Source of the DNA: Guillardia theta CCMP2712
Lineage: Eukaryota; Protista; Cryptophyta
Assembly (NCBI RefSeq): GCF_000315625.1
Contig: NW_005434610.1
Coordinates: 136,790 to 200,789 of the forward strand
Reading direction: 5' to 3'
DNA: 64,000 nt
The position numbers and the translations under genes are program-made. The notes beneath the pieces were generated by a model. That model had not been told where the DNA came from. It made no database searches and was given only the letters and a program-made list of their open reading frames with translations. Below are positions 3,058-45,400 of this stretch, piece after piece; within the stretch, counting starts at the first letter, position 1, and each line of letters starts with the position of its first letter.

Positions 3058-4080
3058 CTTGCTTCTAGCAATGCTCGTCTTCACAGAGATCTTGCAGGAA
3101 CTGATGTTTGTAAGAGCTTGTCGAATACCTTCACACACTACCCTGCAAGAAAACCAGTGAGGGGTGATCAACAGAAGCTGTCTTTGCAGAGCAGCAAAAA
3201 ATCTGCTCTTGCAGAGCAAGATGCGGAACAAAAGGGAACCAGCGCGTTGAACATTTGTGTCGCATGCAGCAACAACATCAAGTAGCGATCGATTGGCATT
3301 CGATATCACCTTCACAGTAACTAACTAAAGCGTCACATTGGATGACAGAGTGTTGCTCTATCGCACTCGCTACAACATGATAGCAATACGGCAGCAAGTA
3401 GCGAATCGTATCAAAGTCATTGCGATAACGAGCAAGAATGTCCAAATGAGGTTTGTAGGAGTAAGCGTCTGAAGCAGGTAGTAACAAACAGCAGAGCGCG
3501 ATCTTGGAAAGAAAAGAATAGCAGAAAGAGAGTGCAAGAGCAGGAGTAGGAAGGAACAGGGATAAGAGAAGGGCAAGGGAAGGGCAACAGAAAGTGCGAA
3601 AGACAAGAGGCTGAAACAGAGACTGAAGATAGACAGGAGTGAGAGACTTGGAATGAGTTGAAACTTCGGGGTCTACAAAGAGGAACGGCTGGCCATCGGA
3701 AACAAGGAGACTTGGGGAGGACATGTGAAGTCCAGGGCAAGCAGGAATGCAAGATCGAACATGTCCATAAAGGGAGAGGAAGGAATGAGGAGGAGGAGTA
3801 CAAAGACGGGATCTATGTGCTCAAGTGGTGGGATGGGGAACGAAAGGGGGCGATGGGCAGTTGAGATGTTGCATGTGCTTTCGTGGATGCGATCTCCCCA
3901 AAATCGGGGAAAGAGACGTTTTCACCAGATATTGGTGCTAAATGCAAAATATGCTTCAAAATTATCAAACTTGTTTTCAAATTTGATTATTATAGTATCA
4001 GGATTTTAATTAGGCTTTGAAAGACCCCTTCGTGGTATGCTGCCTCATAAGCCTTTGGTCTCATTTTACTCTTGTCAGCC

Positions 4081-4530
4081 CACCCACCCTACCCATTCTT
4101 GTTGGAGAACCTTTTGAGGACCCCAAACATTAGTTACCCCACCCCCACATTATAGTGTAATTACCCTCTAAGTCGTGCTGAAAATTTACGGTATAAATAC
4201 CCCCACCCTGATCGCCATTAAATTTCCTCTGAGTACCGGTAACAGACACCCTATTACGAATGTTGGATACCTATAAAACATAGGGAAACAAAGGGGTAGG
4301 GGGGTCCAGCTATACAACGTACCTGTAAATTCGGGGTAGGGGTAGGCTGAAATCACGGGTTAATATGATTGAGAAAAATAGGGTAGGGGTAATAAGACCA
4401 GGGGACCTTTGCATGGAGCATAGAGGGGTACTAATAAATATACTACGGGTACATTTGAGATGCAAGAAGAGGGTAGTAGGTGTTTGGATTGAGTACCGGT
4501 TAATCTATAGAAATCGAAGGTGGTGGGGTA
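4081..4530. promoter_or_regulatory. Bidirectional TACCCC/GGGGTA motif cluster (putative divergent promoter)
   Basis: C-strand copies at 4081-4210 and G-strand copies at 4290-4530. The same pattern recurs upstream of other genes. Confidence 0.4.
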
Positions 4531-5108
4531 ATGCCGGTCAACGGTATGCAGGTGAGTGGATGGAGTTGGAACGGGGAGGGGAGGGGAGGGGAGAAGGACA
4601 GGCAATCAATGGAGTATGGATCTGAGAGTAGAGCCGTTTGAGTGTTGCTGGAGATTGCACATGCTATGTGAAACAAAAGCCCTGATGATGTGAAGTTTTA
4701 TCCTGATGTCCCTACTTGATAGCAAACACTAGAATGGAAATTGTGGCGAGGAGGACATGAGATGTCTTACCGACACTGCACCAACTCTAACGACTCAAGA
4801 TTCCGCATTCAATCATCCTCTAGGGGCTCCAGAGACCGCCAGGTAATATCTCCTCCCCTCCCCTCCGTCCCTCCTTCATCCATCAACCCACCCACCCACC
4901 TCTCCATCTATCTATCCCTCCCTCCTTCCTGTCTGGCGATCTGAGATGCCCGAGCAGGACATAGGATCAGGTGGTACTTACCTCTGGCGACCTTCGCATG
5001 CACGAGCAGAACCTGAGCCCGTGCTGTTGTTCAACTGCTTTCCGAAGCGAGTAGATGGTCTGCGGGAACCAGAAACAAGGAGAGGCAGATCCGCAGCAAG
5101 TTTGAAGA

Positions 5109-5686
5109 ATGAGAGCGGGCGATGGACACGAAGAGACCTGGCTAGCAGAGATGATGCAAGGTCTGTTGTCCTCCCCACAAGACCTCTCATTTGATGTTTC
5201 CTTTGTCAAACTTTCAGATCTTCGATTGCAAGCTTTCAGCGATCACACAGGTAGATCTCCTCCTCCTCCTCCTCCTCCTCCTCCTCCTCCCCCTCCCTTC
5301 AGCTCACTTCGCCATATAATGGCAGAAATTCTTCATGCACCTCTCTCTCGTCCCCTGTTACATTCGCCGCTTCTGCTCCTGTATTGGTTTTTAAGTGGTG
5401 TAGCAGAAATCTCATGGAGTTTGTAGCCAGTGCAAAGCGCAAGGGCATGACAGAAGAGTCTCTAACTGTTCTCAGAGAAGAGGTGAACGAAATTTGCGCT
5501 CCCTGCTGCACATACTTCTCATCCTCGCATCTTCCAGATCCAAGAGATCGGCAAGGCTTTACAAAAACTGAATCAGGTGCACAGAAAGTCCTAAGTCTTC
5601 CTATGGGAAAGTTTTTGAAGACAACCAAAGTCAACTTCAAGGTTTCAGCATTTTTATCATGGTTCGAACGACCTCTCGGCCCGTAA
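5109..5686 (+). CDS. Possible hypothetical protein (exon structure unresolved)
   Basis: Open frame LTSPYNG...FERPLGP* follows a (CCT)n-CAG acceptor and ends 39 bp from the nucleoporin stop. No recognisable domain. Confidence 0.3.
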
Positions 5687-5725
5687 CAACAGCACATGTC
5701 CTAGACGAGCTTCAACCTTTCCCCT

Positions 5726-8700
5726 TCAGTGCTTCTTAGCTGACCTTCGAGCTTTCACTATTTTCCGCTGCGGCACTCCGTCATCCTGACTAGGAGCTCC
5801 ACCCCCGAAACCCCCTTGCGGCGCTCCTCCTCCAAACCCTTGACCCCCGCTGCTCCCGAAGGCGGCAGGTGCCTGCTGCTGCTGTGCTCCTGCCCCGAAC
5901 GTGAAGGGAGCGGCAGCTGACCCAAAGGCTGCCCCACCTCCGAAGGAAGGAGCAGAAGACCCGAACGACGATGCCCCAAAGGCCGAAGAACTTGCGCCAA
6001 ACGGCGACGGAGCTCCCCCACCGAACGGCTGCTGCGACCCACCAAATGCCGGAGCCGAGGCGTTGAAAGCGCTCTGCCCTCCTCCAAAAGTGAAGGTAGA
6101 AGACGATGCTCCGAAGGCTCCAGTAGATCCGAAGGCCGACCCCCCGCCTGTGCTGCCGAAGGGAGGAGCTGCCGGGTTGCCAAACGCCGAGCCGGTCGAG
6201 CCGAACCCTCCGCCACCGAAGGCAGGAGTGGAGGTTGTGCCTGACCCTGTGCTTCCGAAGCCAGAGGGCGCGCTGCTGCCTCCGAAAGTGAACGGCGTGC
6301 CAGCAGCTCCGAAAGCTGAACCCGTCGGTGCCCCGAACGTGAAGGGTTGGCCAGCCGCCGAGGATGGAGCTTCGTCTGACATCATCCCTTCATTGCTAGA
6401 ACCAGCCTTGGCAGCGTCAGCTGCTGCGCTCGAGTTGCCTGCTCCGAATGTGAACGGAGCGTTAGTGCCACCTGTTGACCCAAAGGCTGGGGCGCTCGAC
6501 CCAAAGGCTGGGGCGCTCGACCCAAAGGCTGGGGCGCTCGACCCAAAGGCTGGGGCGCTCGACCCAAAGGCTGGGGCGCTCGACCCAAAGGCTGGGGCGC
6601 TCGACCCAAAGGCTGGGGCGCTCGACCCAGAGGCTGGGGCGCTCGACCCAGAGGCTGGGGTGCTGGACCCGAAAGATGTGGGAGCACTCGAGCCGAAAGC
6701 AAAAACGCTTCCAGTCGACGCGATCTTATCGCCCGCGGCAGAGGATGCAGCTGGAGTGCTGCCGAAAGAAAACGTGGCTGGAGCTGCACTGCCTGTCGAA
6801 GACCCGAAGGCGAAGACTGAGGACGAGGCCGAACTGGCCGCGGACTCTTGAGTCGCAGGCGTACTTCCGAAGGAGAAGACGGCTGGAGTTTGACTGGTCG
6901 ATGTGGAAGATTGAGACGAGCTGGCGCTGGACCCTCCGAACACGAAGGCAGACTTGGACTGTGGTTCCGACGCGCTGGCTGACGTTGGGGGAGCAGCCAC
7001 ATTCGAGCTTCCAAAAGTGAAGACACTGCTGGAGCCTGATTCTGACTTCGGTGCATCCGAGCTCGCCGCACTGGAGTTGCCAAATGTAAACACGCTGCTT
7101 GATGAAGCACTTTGTGTTTCTGCAGATTTCAAGGGAGCTGCACCAAACGAAGGCGTGGTTGAAAAAGAGGAGGACGAGGATGCACCAAATGAGAAAGTCA
7201 GTGGGGCTGAACCGCTTGGAGCTGGGGCAGAAGTCTTTGCTGGCTCACTTCCGAAGCTAAAAGTAGGAGGCTTTGTAGATTCAGAAGGCGCCGAGTCCGT
7301 CTTTGCTGGATCGCTACTTGCTCCCTTGCTATCGCCGCGCTCCTGCTTGTCCTCCTCGTCGATCTCTTTTGACCCTGTCGACTCAAAGCCCACGTCCACC
7401 TTCTTCGTCGGCCACTGGAAGGTCGTAGGTACCCCGCTCTTCCTTGCCATCTCCTCGTACGCCTTCCGCCTCTCTGCCGCTTTCTTTGCTGCATCTCCGT
7501 CTGCATCCTTGCTCGCTGCTCCGCCATCTTCCGCCTTTGACACCTTGCTGTCCTCCTTCTTTTCGTCAGTGCTGCTCTTGCTCGCTCCAAACGTAAAACC
7601 CCCACTTGACGACTTCTCGCCGCTGGAAGCTCCGCTCGACCCAAACGTGAAACCTGGTCCGGCCGCCGTAGATGTCGTAGTCTCAGTCGCCTTGGCACCG
7701 AAACTGAATGTCGAGGACCCTCCTGTAGACGCCGAGGTCGATCCAAAGCCAAACGAGAAGCCTGATGAGCCGCCTCCTGCCGCTGGCTTCGAGCTGGAGG
7801 CTGACCCGAACGTAAAACCTGAGCCGCTGCCTCCTGTACCAAAGCTGAGGCCACTGCTCGATCCCGCATTCGACGTCCCGAACGTGAAGCCCGATGATGC
7901 GCTGCCTCCTGCCGCCTTCTCTCCGCCGGTGGCTCCGGGCTTAGGAGCTTCACAGGACATGCACTTGTCCTTGGCCTCTGCGTTGTTCATCGTCAAGCAC
8001 TCTGTGCATCTCCACTGCCCAGGCTTTGGCTTGAACAATTCCGATAAAGGAACTTGTCCACCGTTTGAGTTTTGGCTACTTTCAGCAGACTTTGATGTGT
8101 CCTTGCTATCGCCGCGCTCCTGCTTGTCCTCCTCGTCGATCTCTTTTGACCCTGTCGACTCAAAGCCCACGTCCACCTTCTTCGTCGGCCACTGGAAGGT
8201 CGTAGGTACCCCGCTCTTCCTTGCCATCTCCTCGTACGCCTTCCGCCTCTCTGCCGCTTTCTTTGCTGCATCTCCGTCTGCATCCTTGCTCGCTGCTCCG
8301 CCATCTTCCGCCTTTGACACCTTGCTGTCCTCCTTCTTTTCGTCAGTGCTGCTCTTGCTCGCTCCAAACGTAAAACCCCCACTTGACGACTTCTCGCCGC
8401 TGGAAGCTCCGCTCGACCCAAACGTGAAACCTGGTCCGGCCGCCGTAGTCTCAGTCGCCTTGGCACCGAAACTGAATGTCGAGGACCCTCCTGTAGACGC
8501 CGAGGTCGATCCAAAGTCAAACGAGAAGCCTGATGAGCCGCCTCCTGCCGCTGGCTTCGAGCTGGAGGCTGACCCGAACGTAAAACCTGAGCCGCTGCCT
8601 CCTGTACCAAAGCTGAGGCCACTGCTCGATCCCGCATTCGACGTCCCGAACGTGAAGCCCGATCCTGCCGCCTTCTCTCCGCCGGTGGCTCCGGGCTTAG

Positions 8701-37889: not shown

Positions 37890-39685
37890 GTGCATGATCA
37901 AGATGAGCAGGACCTGAAGAAGAGGATGGCGTTTGCTGCCGAACCTCCCCGCAAGAGGGACATGAAATATCACGAGGACGACAATAAAGAAGTTCAAGAG
38001 ACTGCTCTGAAGAGAGAGCTTGATGTGTTCGATCTCACAATCATCGGTGTCGGAGGGATCGTGGGAGCTGGGATCTTCGTCCTCTCCGGGCAAGCAGCAG
38101 CCATGTACGCGGGCCCTGCGGTGGTTCTTTCCTTTGCGATCGCAGGAGGGTGTTGTACAATCTACGCTCTGTGCTTTGCCGAGCTCTCCACCATGGTCAC
38201 AGACACTGGGAGTGCGTACACGTACGCTCGTCTCGCCTTCGGGAATTTTGTCGGGTGGATCGTGGGATGGTCGCTGGTGGCAGAGTACTTGTTCTGTGTC
38301 TCTGCTGTCTCGGTGGGATGGAGCGGTTATGCGAGCGAGATCTTTCAGCAGCTGGGAGTTCCTCTGAGCTCCCGATGGAGTACTCCACCCTTAGCCTTCG
38401 ACGAGAACCACAACATCTACTTCACTGGTGCTGTGCTCAACGGCCCTGCTGTCTTCCTCGTCGTCTTCGCCTCCATCATCGTTGGGCTCGGCGTCAGGAT
38501 GTCAGCCATCGTTGCCAAGGTCAGCGTGCTGATCAAGCTGGGGGTGATCGCGACGTTCCTTGCCTGCGGCATGTTCTTCATCCACGGAGAGAACTACAGC
38601 CCCTTCGTTCCCGAGAACAAGGAGGGCGACTTCAAGGACTTCGGGCACTTCGGGTGGTCAGGAGTCTTGAGAGGGTCGAGCATTGTATTCTTTTCCTACG
38701 TCGGTTTCGACGCCATTACTACAGCAGCATCAGAAGCCAAAGATCCGAGCAACGACCTTCCCAACAGCATCTTCTTGAGCCTGGGGATCTCGACTGCGCT
38801 CTACATGCTGGTCCGCTTGCCCTATTCCTCATGCTTCCTGCCCTCTGCCTCCTCCTGCTTCTTTTCTCCTGCCTGCTTCTTGCCTTGAGCGAGCTATTGA
38901 CTCCTCTCTACAGGTCGCCTTCGTCATGTGTGGCCTCGTCTCCTACACAGCCCTGGGAGTTGCCGACCCCATTCTCGTCGCCGTCAAGGCTGCAGGCCCG
39001 GGGCTGTCCTGGCTTGTCCCCCTCATCGCCGTCGCCGTTGTAGTCGGGCTGCCTGGGGTTGTGGTGGTGTCGCTCTATGCTGTGACCCGCGTGCTCTACG
39101 TCATGGCGCTTGACGGAATGCTCCCTCGGCAGTTCCAGGAGGTCAACGAGACCTTCAGCTCCCCGATGTTCAGCACGGGCTTTGCTGGAGTGCTTGCTGC
39201 CATCATCGCTGCCTTGTTCCCCATCTCGGCCATCGCTGAGTTTGTTTCCATTGGCACCCTGCTGGCCTTTGCTGTCATCTGCTATGCTGTCGTCTCCTTG
39301 AGGGAGAAACGCCCCGACATGCCGCGCAACTATCGCGTAATCCTCCTCCCCTCTCCTTCCCCCTTCTTCGTGCGTCCGCCTGACCTTTGTCGTCAGGTAC
39401 CTTTCTCACCCTACCTGCCTTATGCAGGCATGGTCATCGCTGTTTCTCAGGTTTGACCTCCTGCCACCCTCCATCGCTCCTTCTGCACGTTCCTCTTGCA
39501 CGTTTGCTCCTCTTCTCTCTCATTTTCCCTTGAACTTCCTGTCGTGACTTGCGCAAAAGATCCTCTTCCTCCCCTGGATGGCGTGGGTGCGGATGTTGTT
39601 CTGGATCTTGATGGGCCTCGTCATCTGGTACTTCTATGGAAACCGTGTGGAGGAGAAGCCATACTCCTACGATCGGGTAGAGTAA
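37890..39685 (+). CDS. APC-superfamily (CAT-like) amino acid permease; start codon uncertain
   Basis: LKRELDVFDLTIIGVGGIVGAGIFV, AGPAVVLSF, GSAYTY, FFSYVGFD, MALDGMLP and VSIGTLLAF; many TM helices. Confidence 0.9.
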
Positions 39686-39847
39686 GATATCAGAGCGAGT
39701 GCAAACAAAATCTTGGGGCTGAAACAAGGGAGAGGTGAGTAGGAAGGCGAGAGGCAAAGGGATACAGAGCATGAGCAGCGAAGCGTGAGCAGCGCATGCC
39801 TTGATACCTAGTCTCTTCCTCCGCTTGCTCCATCCCCTTCAGCTCCC

Positions 39848-42800
39848 TTACCAATGCTGGACCCCTCGAATGAAGAGCTGCTTCAGCTTGCTCATCAGCT
39901 TCCAGTCCTCACTAGTCATCTCCTCCGCGAAGTGATCTTTCATTGCCTGTATCCCGTCCCGGGTGATCTTGCTGTAAAGTTTCACCTTGTGATCGAACTG
40001 CCGCCCATAGAGGATGTGTGACTGCTGGTCGTTGCTGGGCTCGATCTTCACTGCGACGCTCATCCCGACCTTCGCCACCTTCACCTCCTTGTGGTTGTTC
40101 TGGATGGACGTCACTTTGCCGATCTCTAGAAAGTTGAGCTCAGGAATGCAGAGAGGCGTTCCAACCTGCCAGATGACAGTTGAGTCTGAGCCGCGAGGAG
40201 GGGGGGGGGGGGGGGAAGGGGGGAAGGGTCAGGTGAGGGCGAGGAAGAAGAGGGAGAGAGCTAAATGTGAGCTTGATCAGTGGGAGGCATGAGGGAGAGG
40301 CAAGAATCAGTGAGGCAGGAGAAGAGGTAGCAGGGCAGGGGGAGAAGGAGGTACAAGAGGAGGGAACATGAGACGGGGAGCAGGGGAGCTAGAATGGAGT
40401 ACCTTGAGCGAACCCTCCTTCACCTCACAACCGAGAATGATCGGATTTCTCTTGTTGAACACGTTCTTTGGGATGATACTGAGGATCACAGGGAAGACGG
40501 CGACGCCATTGGAGTACAGCTGGACAGGTTGTCATGCACGGAGCGGGTGCGGGGTGACTTGACCTGCTCCCTCTTTGCCGCCTTCTTCTCCTCCATGAAA
40601 CTCTTGAACTGATCGAAGAGATGGTAGATGATGTTCGCTGTAAAGATCTTGATTCCAGCCTTCTTTGCAAGCGCCTCTGCCTCAGGCACAATCTGCTCGC
40701 TGTCAGCTCCGTTGCTTCCGCTTCCTCCTGCTCACCTTCACATCGAAGGCCAAGATCATGGCCAGGTCTGGCGCTCGTTCGAGCATTGCACTGCATGAGA
40801 TTGAGAGGAAGCAAACGCATAGATGTCGATCACAAGTGACAAGAACAAGAGGACGCGACAAGACATAGCAGTCGCATCAAACACCCACCACGATGTTCAA
40901 CTCTCCCACATCATCTCAACAAGGGACAAGATCTTTCCAACCTGGCTCGGATGACATCTTTCTTGTGCACGGGCCCGATGTTGATGGAGGCAACAGGAAT
41001 GCTCGAGTTGTGCAGGAAGTCCAAAAGTGCCTCCAGAGCTCCCAAGGTCGATGCCTTGGAAAATGTCAGTCTGATAACTCCTTCCTCCTCCTCCTCCTCC
41101 CTCCATCTGCTTGCCAACCACCTCCCTTCACCTTACTCTTTACCCCCCCCCACCCCCCCCCATTCTTCTCCCAACTCCTTTCTCTTCACTCCCTCCTCTT
41201 CACTCTCCCCTCCTCTGCCCTTCCTCGCATGTTACCTGGACATGAACACCTTTCCCGGACTTGTCCACGTCTTTCTTCAGCTCCTCAAGGTCTTCCATCA
41301 CCGAGCTGGGAAATGTCAATCGCCGCCAACAGTACCCTCCTCCCACCTCTTGAGCTCCTCTATATCATCTTCCTTCTCCAGTCTGAGCAGCGACGTTCCT
41401 GAGAGCGAATCAAGACTAAGACGTCTCCTCGCCCTTGTCACCTGCTACTGCTCCTTCCAGACCGCTCGCTGCAATCTTCACGCCCATGGCGGCCTGCAGA
41501 CTTGATGTCACGGGCGGGAGAGCGACGGCCATGCTTGCCTCTATGCTCTTGTGGTGGACATACTCGTTCTTCACGCGCAGTTCTTTCATAGGGTGAGGAG
41601 TGAGGAGAGTCCTGATGGTCGTGACGATTGGGCCCTGCATGCCGCAAACCACAATCGTGTCGCCCTCGTGCAGCTCTCCATGGACTGCCGAAACGACCGG
41701 CGTCAGCATCTGACACTCGAGGAGGGGAAGGAACCAAGGATAATATCGAGCGTGGTCCCGAAGCCTTCCGTCACTTTGACCTTTGGTGAAACTTCAGTGG
41801 GGAGGAAGAGGAGGAGAGGAGGAGAAGCAGAAGTGAGAGGAAGCGAAGGGAGTTGCCAGGACGAGCAGCGGAAGGCGATGAGCAGACCTCAAGAACCGTC
41901 GCCTCAAGAGCTTCGCTGAGCATCAATCTGAAGGGAACGTTCAGCGAAGAAGGGACGGTGAGTGGGAATATCGACCTGTCGACCAACATCTTCTGGGTCA
42001 ACTGGATGCCGAGGAGGAGGAGATCAGGGACGCCTTCACCGGTGATCGCCGATGTTGGAACCACCGAGACCACCTGCGACAAGCAGAAGTGAATATGCAC
42101 GCGCAACCAAATCAATCTGTTTGTGACTAGGAGAAATTGATGGCAATCGCCAGTTCTTACTTTTCTTGGGTTCTTGTTCTCGTAGTAGAGATCAGCATTC
42201 AATCCCTGGCTAGCTATCTCTCCCTTCATTGGGTGTTACCATCCACTGAGTATCCGTACTTCAATCACCTTAATCCCTTGCCACCTGCTTTCAAACTCTC
42301 TGACTGTATGGCTCTTCTGCTTGGCTAGCGTATCCTGTCGATGAAGCGATATTACAATGAAAGGTTGGCTCCAGCAGGACAAGCAGCACCTGTATCGGAG
42401 AATCTTTGTTCGGCTGCCAATCATAGCATCTGATCTCGAGTTACAACGTCTTTGAGTGTTCAAGAACATGGAATGACCGATCGATCTTGTTCAAGGCGAC
42501 AAGAAAAGGGCACCTCCTCCTCTTCAACAGCTGCAGAAATTCAGCACGGAAATCTCCGACACGCCTTCCCAGTCACCTGCAGAGATTCGATCGTCTGGGG
42601 CTCCAGCCCGTGCATGATGTCGACAACGAGGACGCAGATGTCGCAGATCGAAGTTCCTCGTGACCGGAGGTTGCTGAACGATTCGTGTCCGGGGGTATCG
42701 ATCACCAGCAGCCCGGGAATCTTGTAGTCGACCTTAACAGAATGGGACACCTGATCCGTGAGCTTGCGCAGGTTTGTCATGGGGAAGAACGTCGCGCCAA

Positions 42801-43559
42801 TCTGCTGTGTGATCCCTCCCGCCTCTCCCTCTTGCACGTTGGTCTTCCTTACTTTGTCCAACAACTTTGTCTTTCCGGTGTCCACATGTCCCAGTACACA
42901 GAGGATGGGCGACCTCAATCTGGCAAGATTCGTCAGAGAGCTGAGAGAGGCGAACAAGATCATCGAGAACAGTCCTTTCACCTGTCTTTGCTTCTCGCTT
43001 GCTTCGCGTCTTCCTTCCTTTGCAAACGATCCTGCTTCGCTGCTTCGATTCTTGCCAGCAGTGCCTCGTCGACCTGCGCACTTTCCTCCTCGTCGCTCTC
43101 CTCCTCCTCGCCTTCTTGCTTCCTCCTCCGCTTCTCTTCCTCTTGTTTCCTGGCTGCCAGCAATTCCTCTGGTATCTTGTACTTGTCGTCTGTATTGAGA
43201 TACTGGATGTCCTGTGTCAATTCCTCCAGGTCGACCGCCTCTTCCGCCTCCTGCGTGTTCGCTCCTGCCACGTCCTGATCGTCACTGTCGTCTGATGAAA
43301 CATAGCTCGATGTCCCCAGCTCCGACGAGCTCTCCCCTTTTGCTGCTCCTCCCCGCAACCGCAGTCGCGCCGAAGATGAAAGCTGTGAAAAGTCGTTCAA
43401 GAAACGCTGCGAGGTCGACCCTGAGGAGACGATTCGAGGAAGATGGATGCCAACCTTGTGCTGCGAACTCTCAAGAAGCGTTGTGCATCCAACAAGCAGC
43501 AAGATTGCAACGGAAACGTAAAACTTGCTGTGCGCGTCCACGGCGAATTCCCGAAACAT
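39848..43559 (-). CDS. eIF5B: Eukaryote-type translation initiation factor eIF5B with bipartite (signal + transit) presequence, probably periplastid-targeted
   Basis: [81 protein letters not shown] and [10 protein letters not shown]-terminal hydrophobic signal followed by ..ARLRLRGG. Confidence 0.93.
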
Positions 43560-44589
43560 ATTAATCGAACTATGTGGAGGAAAACTCTGGGAACTCGGAG
43601 ACCGGCTGAACCATCAGACGCTGCGAGCAAGATCAGGTTGCAAGAATGAACACCATCGATGAAAGAGCTTCAATCCACTCTCTCTTCAACTTCTATCAAG
43701 AATGTGTGGGAGCACCAACTCAAACGGGTTAGAGATAGCGGTCGTGAATCAATGACTTTCGGCTTTCGTCACCCCAAGACTAAGAGCATTTTGTCTTCCA
43801 GAGCATCAAAAAGCCGTCCCTCATGTACTGTCTCCTTTCTACCATATCTTTCATGCATCGAAAGTACATGATCACTTGGCCCCCGTATCGCCCTCAGCAA
43901 TCATTCCATCCCTCTCTGGAGTTCTTCACTTTCATGCTCATCCCCTTTCTCTAGCACTGTTCAAAGGACATCTTTCATCCTAATCCTTATTCTCCTCCTC
44001 CTCCTCCTCCTCCTCCTCCTCTCGTAACGGCGATCGCATTTCATCGATCCTCATAGCGACCGCCCCCGCAAGTACCCCCACCCCCTCTGACCAGTTTCAG
44101 CCAACAAAATCTTTCCTACCCCACTTTGAGTTAATCCACCTACCACTACCACCAACGACATTACTATTGAGCACCCGTCCTAGACTACCCATAGATACAA
44201 TATACCCCACCACTTTGTATCCACCCCAGCTTTCTCCCCACCCCGTCTCCTGTAGGGAATTCTGGTGAAATGCAAGGGTGCTTCGAGCTATTGCCTGCTA
44301 CTCCCCCCACCCACCCCCACCCCACCCTCCTGATGAGGTAGGCTAAGCGTTTCACGCCAGGCCCAGAGGTCCAGATGTCCAGATCCCGTGGTACTAACTT
44401 TACTCAATAAATTTGAAATCATCTGGACCAATGGCATAAAAGAGAATTATATTTCCAAAGGTCGAGATGGTGAACCGTTGTGGTCGAGTTTGTCAGCAGG
44501 GTGATTGCACCCTCATACCCATGCTTCCCGCCCTTCCCTTCCTGCCTTGCTGTGTACCCCGTGCGGACTCCAGTGATGAAGCTCGAGTT

Positions 44590-45400
44590 TGCCATTAGCT
44601 CGAGCTAATGGCAAACTTGAGTACCTTGAGTACCTTGAATCCCTGTCGCATGATGACGAAAGTATTCTGGAGACATGGACACGTTGTGAGATGCTTCTGT
44701 TGATGTGCAATGTGACGGGCAATGACGAGAAAGCGCCTGAACTGGGGGGAATGGGTGGAGACCCTATTGGACAAGGAAGTCATTCTTCGCCTTTAACGTG
44801 CAGGCCGTGTGTGATGCCAATCGAAAGGGTGCAGCCCTAGCAAGAGATGGCAGAAACATTGGAAATGGAATGTATATAGTTGGAGATGCAGCATACAAAG
44901 GAATTCCTGGAATAATCACTCCTTTTGATGGATCAAAGCTCCCAATTTGGCAAGACAGTTATAATTTTCATCAATCTCAAATCCGGACTAACATTGAGTG
45001 CGCATTCGGAATGTTGAGGAACAGATGGGGAGTGTTCTGGCGTGGATTACGCACAGACTCACTGGAAATTGCAAGCACTAGTGTGAGTGTATGTTTGCAA
45101 TTGCACAATTTTATATTAGACATGGATGGAACAGATGCCGATCCTCTTGAGGAAATTATTGTAGAATAGGAGTACTGCTCCCCCGTGCCATGCCAGGACA
45201 GATTGTCAGAACAGCATCGACCTATCTTGAATGAAAACGGTGGTCCAGCTGATTTTTGGTCGAGTTCTCCCATCAACGCCATGGTTACTGACGAGTTTGA
45301 CAGTGTCAGTATCAGGAACAGTCTAGTTGAAACACTGCAAAACATGCAGATACCAAGACCATCCTGGAATCAAAGGCCGCCGCCAGATTCTTCGATGTAA
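44590..45400 (+). pseudogene. Harbinger (DDE_Tnp_4-like) transposase pseudogene
   Basis: YWTRKSFFAFNVQAVCDANRK, YIVGDAAY and YNFHQSQIRTNIECAFGMLRNRWG are present. The GAIDG and PGSxHD segments are missing, there is a frameshift near 44760 and an in-frame TAG at 45167-45169. Confidence 0.85.

Follow-up and report, generated by a model that had tools for sequence, protein, structure and literature searches.

A cytosolic-type eIF5B of Guillardia theta with an LRGG-ended leader, a probable cutting or sorting mark of periplastid proteins

In a 64,000-nucleotide stretch of the Guillardia theta CCMP2712 genome (contig NW_005434610.1, positions 136,790 to 200,789; hereafter, the window), we found a cytosolic-type translation initiation factor, eIF5B, that begins with a presumed import leader ending in LRLRGG, the last six residues of ubiquitin. 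The final four of these residues, LRGG, are invariant among the orthologues of this protein, and LRLRGG recurs in the same position, after a signal-like N-terminus, in many otherwise unrelated genes of this alga (22 of 35 sites against a baseline of 6%, p about 1e-18). We propose that LRGG at the end of a leader is probably a previously undescribed cutting or sorting site of proteins bound for the periplastid compartment (PPC). The motif bears on periplastid-versus-stromal sorting and on leader removal in complex plastids, as well as on the SELMA deubiquitinase of cryptophytes, and because it is short, conserved and readily mutated, these sorting and processing questions are directly testable. 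It also offers a way to mark the periplastid proteome at the sequence level, independently of uncertain predictions of signal-peptidase sites. With such a leader, eIF5B would join EF-1alpha and several aminoacyl-tRNA synthetases among the nucleus-encoded parts of the relict endosymbiont’s protein synthesis.

A leader-bearing eIF5B gene and its transcript

The gene lies on the minus strand of the window, and its structure was read from contigs of three public runs (X1, X2 and X4) over positions 39500–44200. Its features, in window coordinates, are as follows.

39807..43622, minus strand: extent of the transcript of the leader-bearing eIF5B gene; 16 or more exons, with many introns 41–55 nt long; from spliced contigs of X1, X2 and X4
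43570..43614, minus strand: upstream ORF in the 5′ UTR; ATG at 43614–43612, 14 sense codons and TAG, with the main ORF in another frame; inside the X1 contig that reaches 43622
43557..43559, minus strand: eIF5B start codon ATG; first in-frame start after a stop, inside the mRNA
43473..43523, minus strand: hydrophobic core of the presumed ER signal peptide; residues 13–29, by hydropathy
43365..43472, minus strand: transit-peptide-like spacer; residues 30–65, Ser/Arg-rich, net charge +2, unconserved
43347..43364, minus strand: LRLRGG; residues 66–71, equal to ubiquitin residues 71–76, with LRGG as conserved core
42982..43346, minus strand: remainder of exon 1 from the presumed mature N-terminus; conserved Ser/acid patch ESSxxL..TSSxVSSDxS, followed by charged K/E/R sequence
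42920..42981, minus strand: intron 1, 62 nt; joint 42919/42982 in X1, X2 and X4
42577..42919, minus strand: exon 2, start of the GTPase domain; Pfam GTP_EFTU, E = 3.8e-24; borders from spliced contigs
39848..42530, minus strand: remaining part of the G domain, with domain II, IF-2 and domain IV; stop codon, 39848–39850; from Pfam, with exon borders incomplete by three joints

The X2 contig (2459 nt) spans 39807–43598 and one X1 contig extends upstream to 43622, placing the eIF5B start codon inside the mRNA; the 5′ extent of the transcript is that of Logan contigs only, since raw RNA-seq run X14 yielded 53 reads, mostly at repeats, too few to map the transcription start. The contigs contain 15 listed small introns with GT..AG-type ends, and splicing of intron 1 joins exon 1 in frame to the exon that opens the GTPase domain. 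Exon 1, read directly from the minus strand, comprises 193 codons from the ATG (ORF 42978–43559). Inspection of the translated exon found no second methionine, and therefore no downstream start within exon 1 would keep the full G domain. A start of translation downstream of the leader, which the first-pass annotation had named as a ground for refutation, is thereby excluded within this exon.

Domains were searched in the exon pieces singly and in the public model P0016 (GUITHDRAFT_75289, 629 aa) rather than in a joined spliced protein. Exon 2 holds the P-loop motif GHVDxGKT and the DTPGH motif (IDTPGHESF), and P0016 matched GTP_EFTU (6.2e-36), PF03144 (domain II, 1.5e-7), PF11987 (IF-2, 7.6e-20) and PF14578 (domain IV, 2.8e-14), its closest named relatives being annotated as ‘translation initiation factor 5B’. 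The gene therefore encodes a complete eIF5B with all four domains, of the cytosolic type that the first-pass annotation of this DNA had named.

Public gene models miss such leaders, and GUITHDRAFT_75289 is an example. It begins at an ATG within intron 1, which leaves out exon 1 with its 193 residues and the leader, so that proteome-wide targeting predictions based on the catalogue are blind to the leader of eIF5B. The same model apparently keeps a 45-nt intron (41492–41536) that is spliced out in the contigs, giving it 15 extra residues relative to the paralogue. Two further features of the locus were recorded. Raw RNA reads pile up at 40128–40284 within the 237-nt intron 40164–40400, with an A>G difference at 40216 and loose ends, and this pile-up probably stems from a repeat or a different transcript. 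A fragment of a PIF/Harbinger-type DDE transposase (44798–45169, plus strand; DDE_Tnp_4, E = 3e-11) is found in a stretch of lower GC content about 1.2 kb upstream of the eIF5B start.

Layout of the leader

The best 10-residue hydropathy window of the leader covers residues 15–24 (mean Kyte-Doolittle 2.91), and judged by hydropathy the first 71 residues are presumed to be an import leader with an ER signal peptide. Of the signal plus transit-like region claimed earlier, the extension itself stands, being transcribed and having the layout of Guillardia PPC leaders, while the signal part is presumed from hydropathy. The published rule for PPC leaders asks for a signal peptide together with a transit-like region whose first residue is non-aromatic (Gould et al. 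2006 as summarised in PMC4494062). In eIF5B this +1 residue is ambiguous because several signal-peptidase sites fit the -3/-1 rule: cuts after C25, T26 or S31 would leave T, T or S, and a cut after T27 would leave Leu, which counts as a stromal signal (PMC4494062).

A spacer of 36 residues with a net charge of +2 separates the hydrophobic segment from LRLRGG. The hexapeptide has the codons ctg cgg ttg cgg gga gga at 43364–43347, where the first-pass annotation had placed the end of the presequence, and its identity with the C-terminus of ubiquitin is exact. The acidic character described for the region that follows is likewise borne out, the 40 residues after GG carrying a net charge of -10. 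GG occupies residues 70–71 of a protein of ~800 residues and hence is not near the C-terminus. Read as a protease site, L68-R69-G70-G71 followed by A72 would place LRGG at P4–P1 with a non-proline P1′. No Pfam family matched exon 1, and no beta-grasp (ubiquitin) fold was found ahead of LRLRGG.

We defined a class of LRGG-ended leaders as a methionine with a hydrophobic stretch, a D/E/K-poor spacer of 13–47 residues, [x][x]LRGG, and then normal or acidic composition. The eIF5B leader fits this class in each part, from the methionine and hydrophobic stretch through the spacer to LRLRGG and the change of composition. The layout is also that of the bipartite periplastid leaders of cryptophytes and diatoms, which combine a hydrophobic signal, a slightly positive Ser/Ala/Arg-rich spacer and cytosolic-type cargo, and of which the GFP-tested examples share the ending described here. 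The published rule differs in that it concerns the first transit-like residue only; none of the papers searched mentions LRGG at the far end or the agent of leader removal in the PPC.

LRGG is the conserved unit

Orthologues were gathered by a full HMMER search with exon 1, which led to one relative in Tara Oceans metagenomes, and by a word search from that relative, which led to the rest, including Rhodomonas salina. Across nine aligned orthologues (26–42% identity), the only invariant columns within the first 80 residues are L68, R69, G70 and G71; the junction reads LRLRGG, GRLRGG (six times), RRLRGG or LSLRGG, and a tenth fragment, P0014, carries GRLRGG. Upstream of LRGG the leaders vary in length and cannot be aligned with each other; a hydrophobic segment is present in the corresponding position. 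Downstream, S84, S85, V87, S88 and S92 are invariant in the Ser/acid patch that follows the motif. The conserved unit is thus LRGG, corresponding to P4–P1 of ubiquitin.

Recurrence of LRLRGG across the genome

A loose DNA pattern for LRLRGG had 353 matches in the genome against 255 for a reversed-string control, and its TTR-first subset had 80 against 38. The pattern for the reversed peptide GGRLRL had 193 matches, and among the listed ones only about one in three encodes the exact peptide, by an estimate made by eye. Among 56 sampled sites of the LRLRGG pattern, 43 had exact LRLRGG in an open frame, none of them being ubiquitin itself (0/43). At 22 of these 43 sites the motif lies 29–70 residues (once 109) after an in-frame methionine and hydrophobic stretch, a count that becomes 25 when three cases just below the threshold are included. 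Counting LRLRGG after signal peptides genome-wide had been suggested as a check of the first-pass reading, and when open frames of 60 aa or more are considered, the share is 22/35; the same methionine and hydrophobic-stretch test is passed by 6.0% of open-frame positions drawn at random from this DNA (binomial p = 8.5e-19). Extrapolation from the two samples, weighted, gives a rough figure of 150–200 genes with LRLRGG-ended leaders, to which variants of the LSLRGG type would add.

Each of the six motif positions uses at least four different codons across the leaders, and BLASTP among the sampled leaders found none that resembles another. These two observations together indicate that selection acts on the peptide, independently in many genes; on the same grounds we rejected descent of the motif from a common leader exon or a DNA repeat. 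In the 25 sampled leaders the spacers are 13–47 residues long, share the composition of the eIF5B spacer and are rich in S, A, G, L, R and P (S 15%, A 10%, G 9%, R 8%), and D, E and K together make up 10% of the residues before the motif against 24% of the 20 residues after it. Proline occurs at P1′ in none of the 25.

Could LRLRGG in eIF5B simply be a hexapeptide that arose by chance in a presequence rich in Arg, Leu, Gly and Ser? The motif was noticed after the fact, and one or two copies of a given hexapeptide are expected, by our estimate, in a proteome of this size. Against this stand the strong enrichment in leader context across the genome and the invariance of LRGG at a junction whose upstream sequence is otherwise unalignable in nine orthologues, with GRLRGG in the tenth, and we consider a chance origin in eIF5B very improbable. 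As a property of leader ends in this genome, LRLRGG is not due to chance.

A separate repeat was encountered in these searches. An identical 17-mer, TTGAGTCTTAGAGGTGG, which encodes LSLRGG, occurs at five or more places (C8:1171620, C14:11657, C161:109967, C222:1396 and C576:1391; loci L044 and L050), and its copies share the context ...RLSLRGGQEAERSCGPQGGKEEEINEVD. It resembles a dispersed repeat more than an import leader.

Link to the periplastid compartment

Reference proteins of G. theta were taken from the ASAFind 2.0 supplement (PMC12136025, supplementary file 19). Six of them, ugg-t, EF-1alpha, 14-3-3, RRM1, CyP and Ubc8, are PPC proteins localised with GFP (Gould et al. 2006 evidence, per PMC12136025), and all six carry xLRGG at the end of the leader (MSLRGG, IPLRGG and, four times, LRLRGG). 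Cdc48, assigned to the PPC by BLAST, carries MRLRGG. The motif is common but not universal, since 7 of 15 G. theta entries with a signal in the published PPC set (PMC12136025) are without it. Among 22 cryptophyte plastid leaders of the same source with Phe or Tyr at +1, none has LRGG and one has VRGG; the sole LRLRGG sequence in the cryptophyte plastid set belongs to an FBPase paralogue that has no aromatic residue at +1. The difference between 6/6 GFP-localised PPC proteins and 0/22 stromal-type leaders (Fisher’s test, about 3e-6) agrees with the enrichment in periplastid proteins that the first-pass reading would lead one to expect.

By analogy with these proteins, we infer that eIF5B resides in the PPC, and a ribosome-dependent GTPase with such a leader would be useful only there. 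Routing to the secretory pathway and ER or to the stroma, where the motif would be a pro-peptide site in eIF5B and the other LRLRGG proteins, seems improbable. The signal peptide is judged by hydropathy, one of the possible signal-peptidase cuts would leave the stromal +1 Leu (PMC4494062), and some of the sampled LRLRGG proteins are without known function, all of which would leave room for such a route. It sits poorly, however, with the absence from the ER lumen and the stroma of the 80S ribosomes on which eIF5B and EF-1alpha act, and with the partition of the motif between GFP-tested periplastid proteins and stromal-type leaders.

The periplastid ubiquitin precursor gt_155024 consists of a signal, a degenerate ubiquitin-like domain ending in CLRVRGG, and ubiquitin ending in LRLRGG-SY, and must be cut behind two GG sites within the compartment. 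From this architecture it follows that a ubiquitin-tail hydrolase must act in the PPC.

Leader endings of a similar kind were seen in the diatom Thalassiosira pseudonana, in sCdc48 (SARGG), sCdc48-2 (IGRGG), sDer1-1 (DLRGG), sSec14 (QIRGG) and TrxH (SLRGG). This amounts to about 5 of 23 signal-bearing entries with xRGG, compared with fewer than one expected by chance, in a count made after the fact.

Proposed processing of the leader

We propose that the leader takes eIF5B across the ERAD-derived SELMA translocon into the PPC, the site of the nucleomorph-derived 80S ribosomes, where a ubiquitin-tail-specific cysteine protease of the deubiquitinase (DUB) type, in or at the compartment, would cut directly after GG. 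The cut would remove the leader and release eIF5B beginning at A72, and its early timing may prevent the protein from continuing into the stroma. The steps that we infer are cleavage after GG, the protease class and the role in retention, and on balance we lean towards this explanation as a whole.

For the most part, the ubiquitin tail is recognised by enzymes acting at G76, in the active sites of E1 and of DUBs. Papain-like viral DUBs cut LXGG or LRGG peptides without a ubiquitin fold. Because known readers of the tail act at this glycine, because a linear LXGG suffices for the viral enzymes, and because import uses ubiquitin machinery derived from ERAD, DUB-type cleavage after GG seems to us the most economical reading of the motif. 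The junction in EF-1alpha (locus L023, gt_84077) fits it as well: there LRLRGG stands directly before the canonical N-terminus minus its methionine, so that the motif adjoins canonical residue G2.

Two known systems resemble the proposed one most closely. Deubiquitinases cut ubiquitin precursors after LRLRGG, and in polyubiquitin, in fusions of ubiquitin with ribosomal proteins and in gt_155024 the identical hexapeptide lies directly upstream of the released protein, with any P1′ residue except proline, the residue also missing at P1′ of the leaders. The leaders differ from these precursors in lacking the ubiquitin fold, for which they have just the short unconserved spacer, and in that their cargo is the C-terminal part and the ‘ubiquitin side’ is disposable. 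Papain-like viral proteases such as coronavirus PLpro, which recognise linear LXGG or LRGG at P4–P1 without the fold, provide a precedent for tail mimicry that directs cleavage; there both enzyme and substrate are viral, whereas here the candidate principle belongs to a cellular import pathway.

Most cellular DUBs draw most of their affinity from the ubiquitin fold, and the absence of this fold upstream of the eIF5B motif, where there is a 36-residue spacer only, argues against DUB cleavage. LRGG might then be functional in PPC leaders without being a DUB site, either as a recognition or retention signal for SELMA or a PPC component, or as a site for another peptidase, for example one in the ER lumen. 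We regard this as possible rather than probable. Conservation, recurrence and the link to the PPC speak for a function and not for a mechanism, and cryptophytes are not represented in the ptDUP clade of SELMA deubiquitinases (PMC12412216). A related case is the ubiquitin-like protein PUBL of Toxoplasma, another organism that uses SELMA, in which RGG lies at the junction of a plastid-import presequence and the mature domain; its authors discussed RGG as a potential DUB site, and it proved to be neither cut nor required. PUBL is, however, a single protein and itself ubiquitin-like, unlike the many unrelated cargoes on which the leader motif is found and conserved in G. theta.

The arrangement of a signal peptide, 13–47 residues, a short motif and an acidic region also resembles the leaders with PEXEL in Plasmodium and RxLR-dEER in oomycetes, where a short motif some 15–50 residues after the signal peptide serves as a processing and sorting mark. 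Plasmepsin V acts on PEXEL, and RxLR effectors are trimmed by a protease. Sequence, destination and (aspartic) protease are different in those systems, and LRLRGG fits neither the RxLxE/Q/D consensus nor the spacing of RxLR; we rejected a motif of the PEXEL/RxLR type for this reason. A role other than DUB cleavage must further accommodate the facts that the conserved residues are exactly P4–P1 of ubiquitin, often with all six residues of the tail, in a pathway that uses ubiquitin machinery, that the known readers of the tail are enzymes acting at G76, and that in EF-1alpha the motif adjoins the first conserved residue, as is expected of a cleavage point.

If a DUB-type protease does act after GG, one candidate is a protein with a Zn-finger and a Ufm1-peptidase (UfSP) domain, Gt2_270, which together with its orthologues is encoded in all four sequenced cryptophyte nucleomorphs (PMC6559170). 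A broader generalization, which we put forward tentatively and judge slightly more apt to fail than to hold, is that PPC proteins lose their leaders to a ubiquitin-tail-specific protease reading linear LRGG, a ‘transit peptidase’ recruited from the ubiquitin system that powers SELMA. Such a protease could decide between PPC and stroma, and the rule may predate the split between cryptophytes and diatoms, given that several periplastid leaders of Thalassiosira end in xRGG. In the searchable literature we found no paper linking LRLRGG, RLRGG or LRGG with Guillardia, transit peptides or the periplastid compartment, where an unindexed mention in older papers is possible, and the combination of diglycine and periplastid led to the apicoplast PUBL work only.

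Other eIF5B loci and the nucleomorph factor

The first-pass annotation had inferred host control of symbiont 80S translation. That the host supplies a factor missing from the symbiont is doubtful, because a review lists eIF5B among the initiation factors encoded by the nucleomorph (PMC3388326). The nucleomorph protein was absent among the listed protein matches; if the review is correct, the imported copy would supplement the resident one or be replacing it, rather than filling a gap.

Searching the 87.1-Mb genome (669 contigs) identified two eIF5B loci besides the gene in the window, on contigs 9 and 28. The contig 9 protein has a long K/E-rich N-terminus, beginning MGYGGMPRKKKDDIDWD, without a signal, and shares 43% identity with the window protein across domains II–IV; on the strength of this divergence and the signal-less N-terminus, the window gene is an old, separate, leader-bearing paralogue. 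The contig 28 locus (L040, G000:C28:309000-318999, about 5098–7733, minus strand) is a relative of the one on contig 9. In its final long open frame there is only a weak IF-2 match (4.8e-6) and no recognisable domain IV, and the locus may be a divergent or truncated paralogue. In the host-type protein of contig 9 (L039, G000:C9:940000-949999, ORF 3548–5128, plus strand), a tRNA-binding OB domain is inserted in the N-terminal region (Pfam tRNA_bind, E = 4e-13), an unusual fusion for eIF5B.
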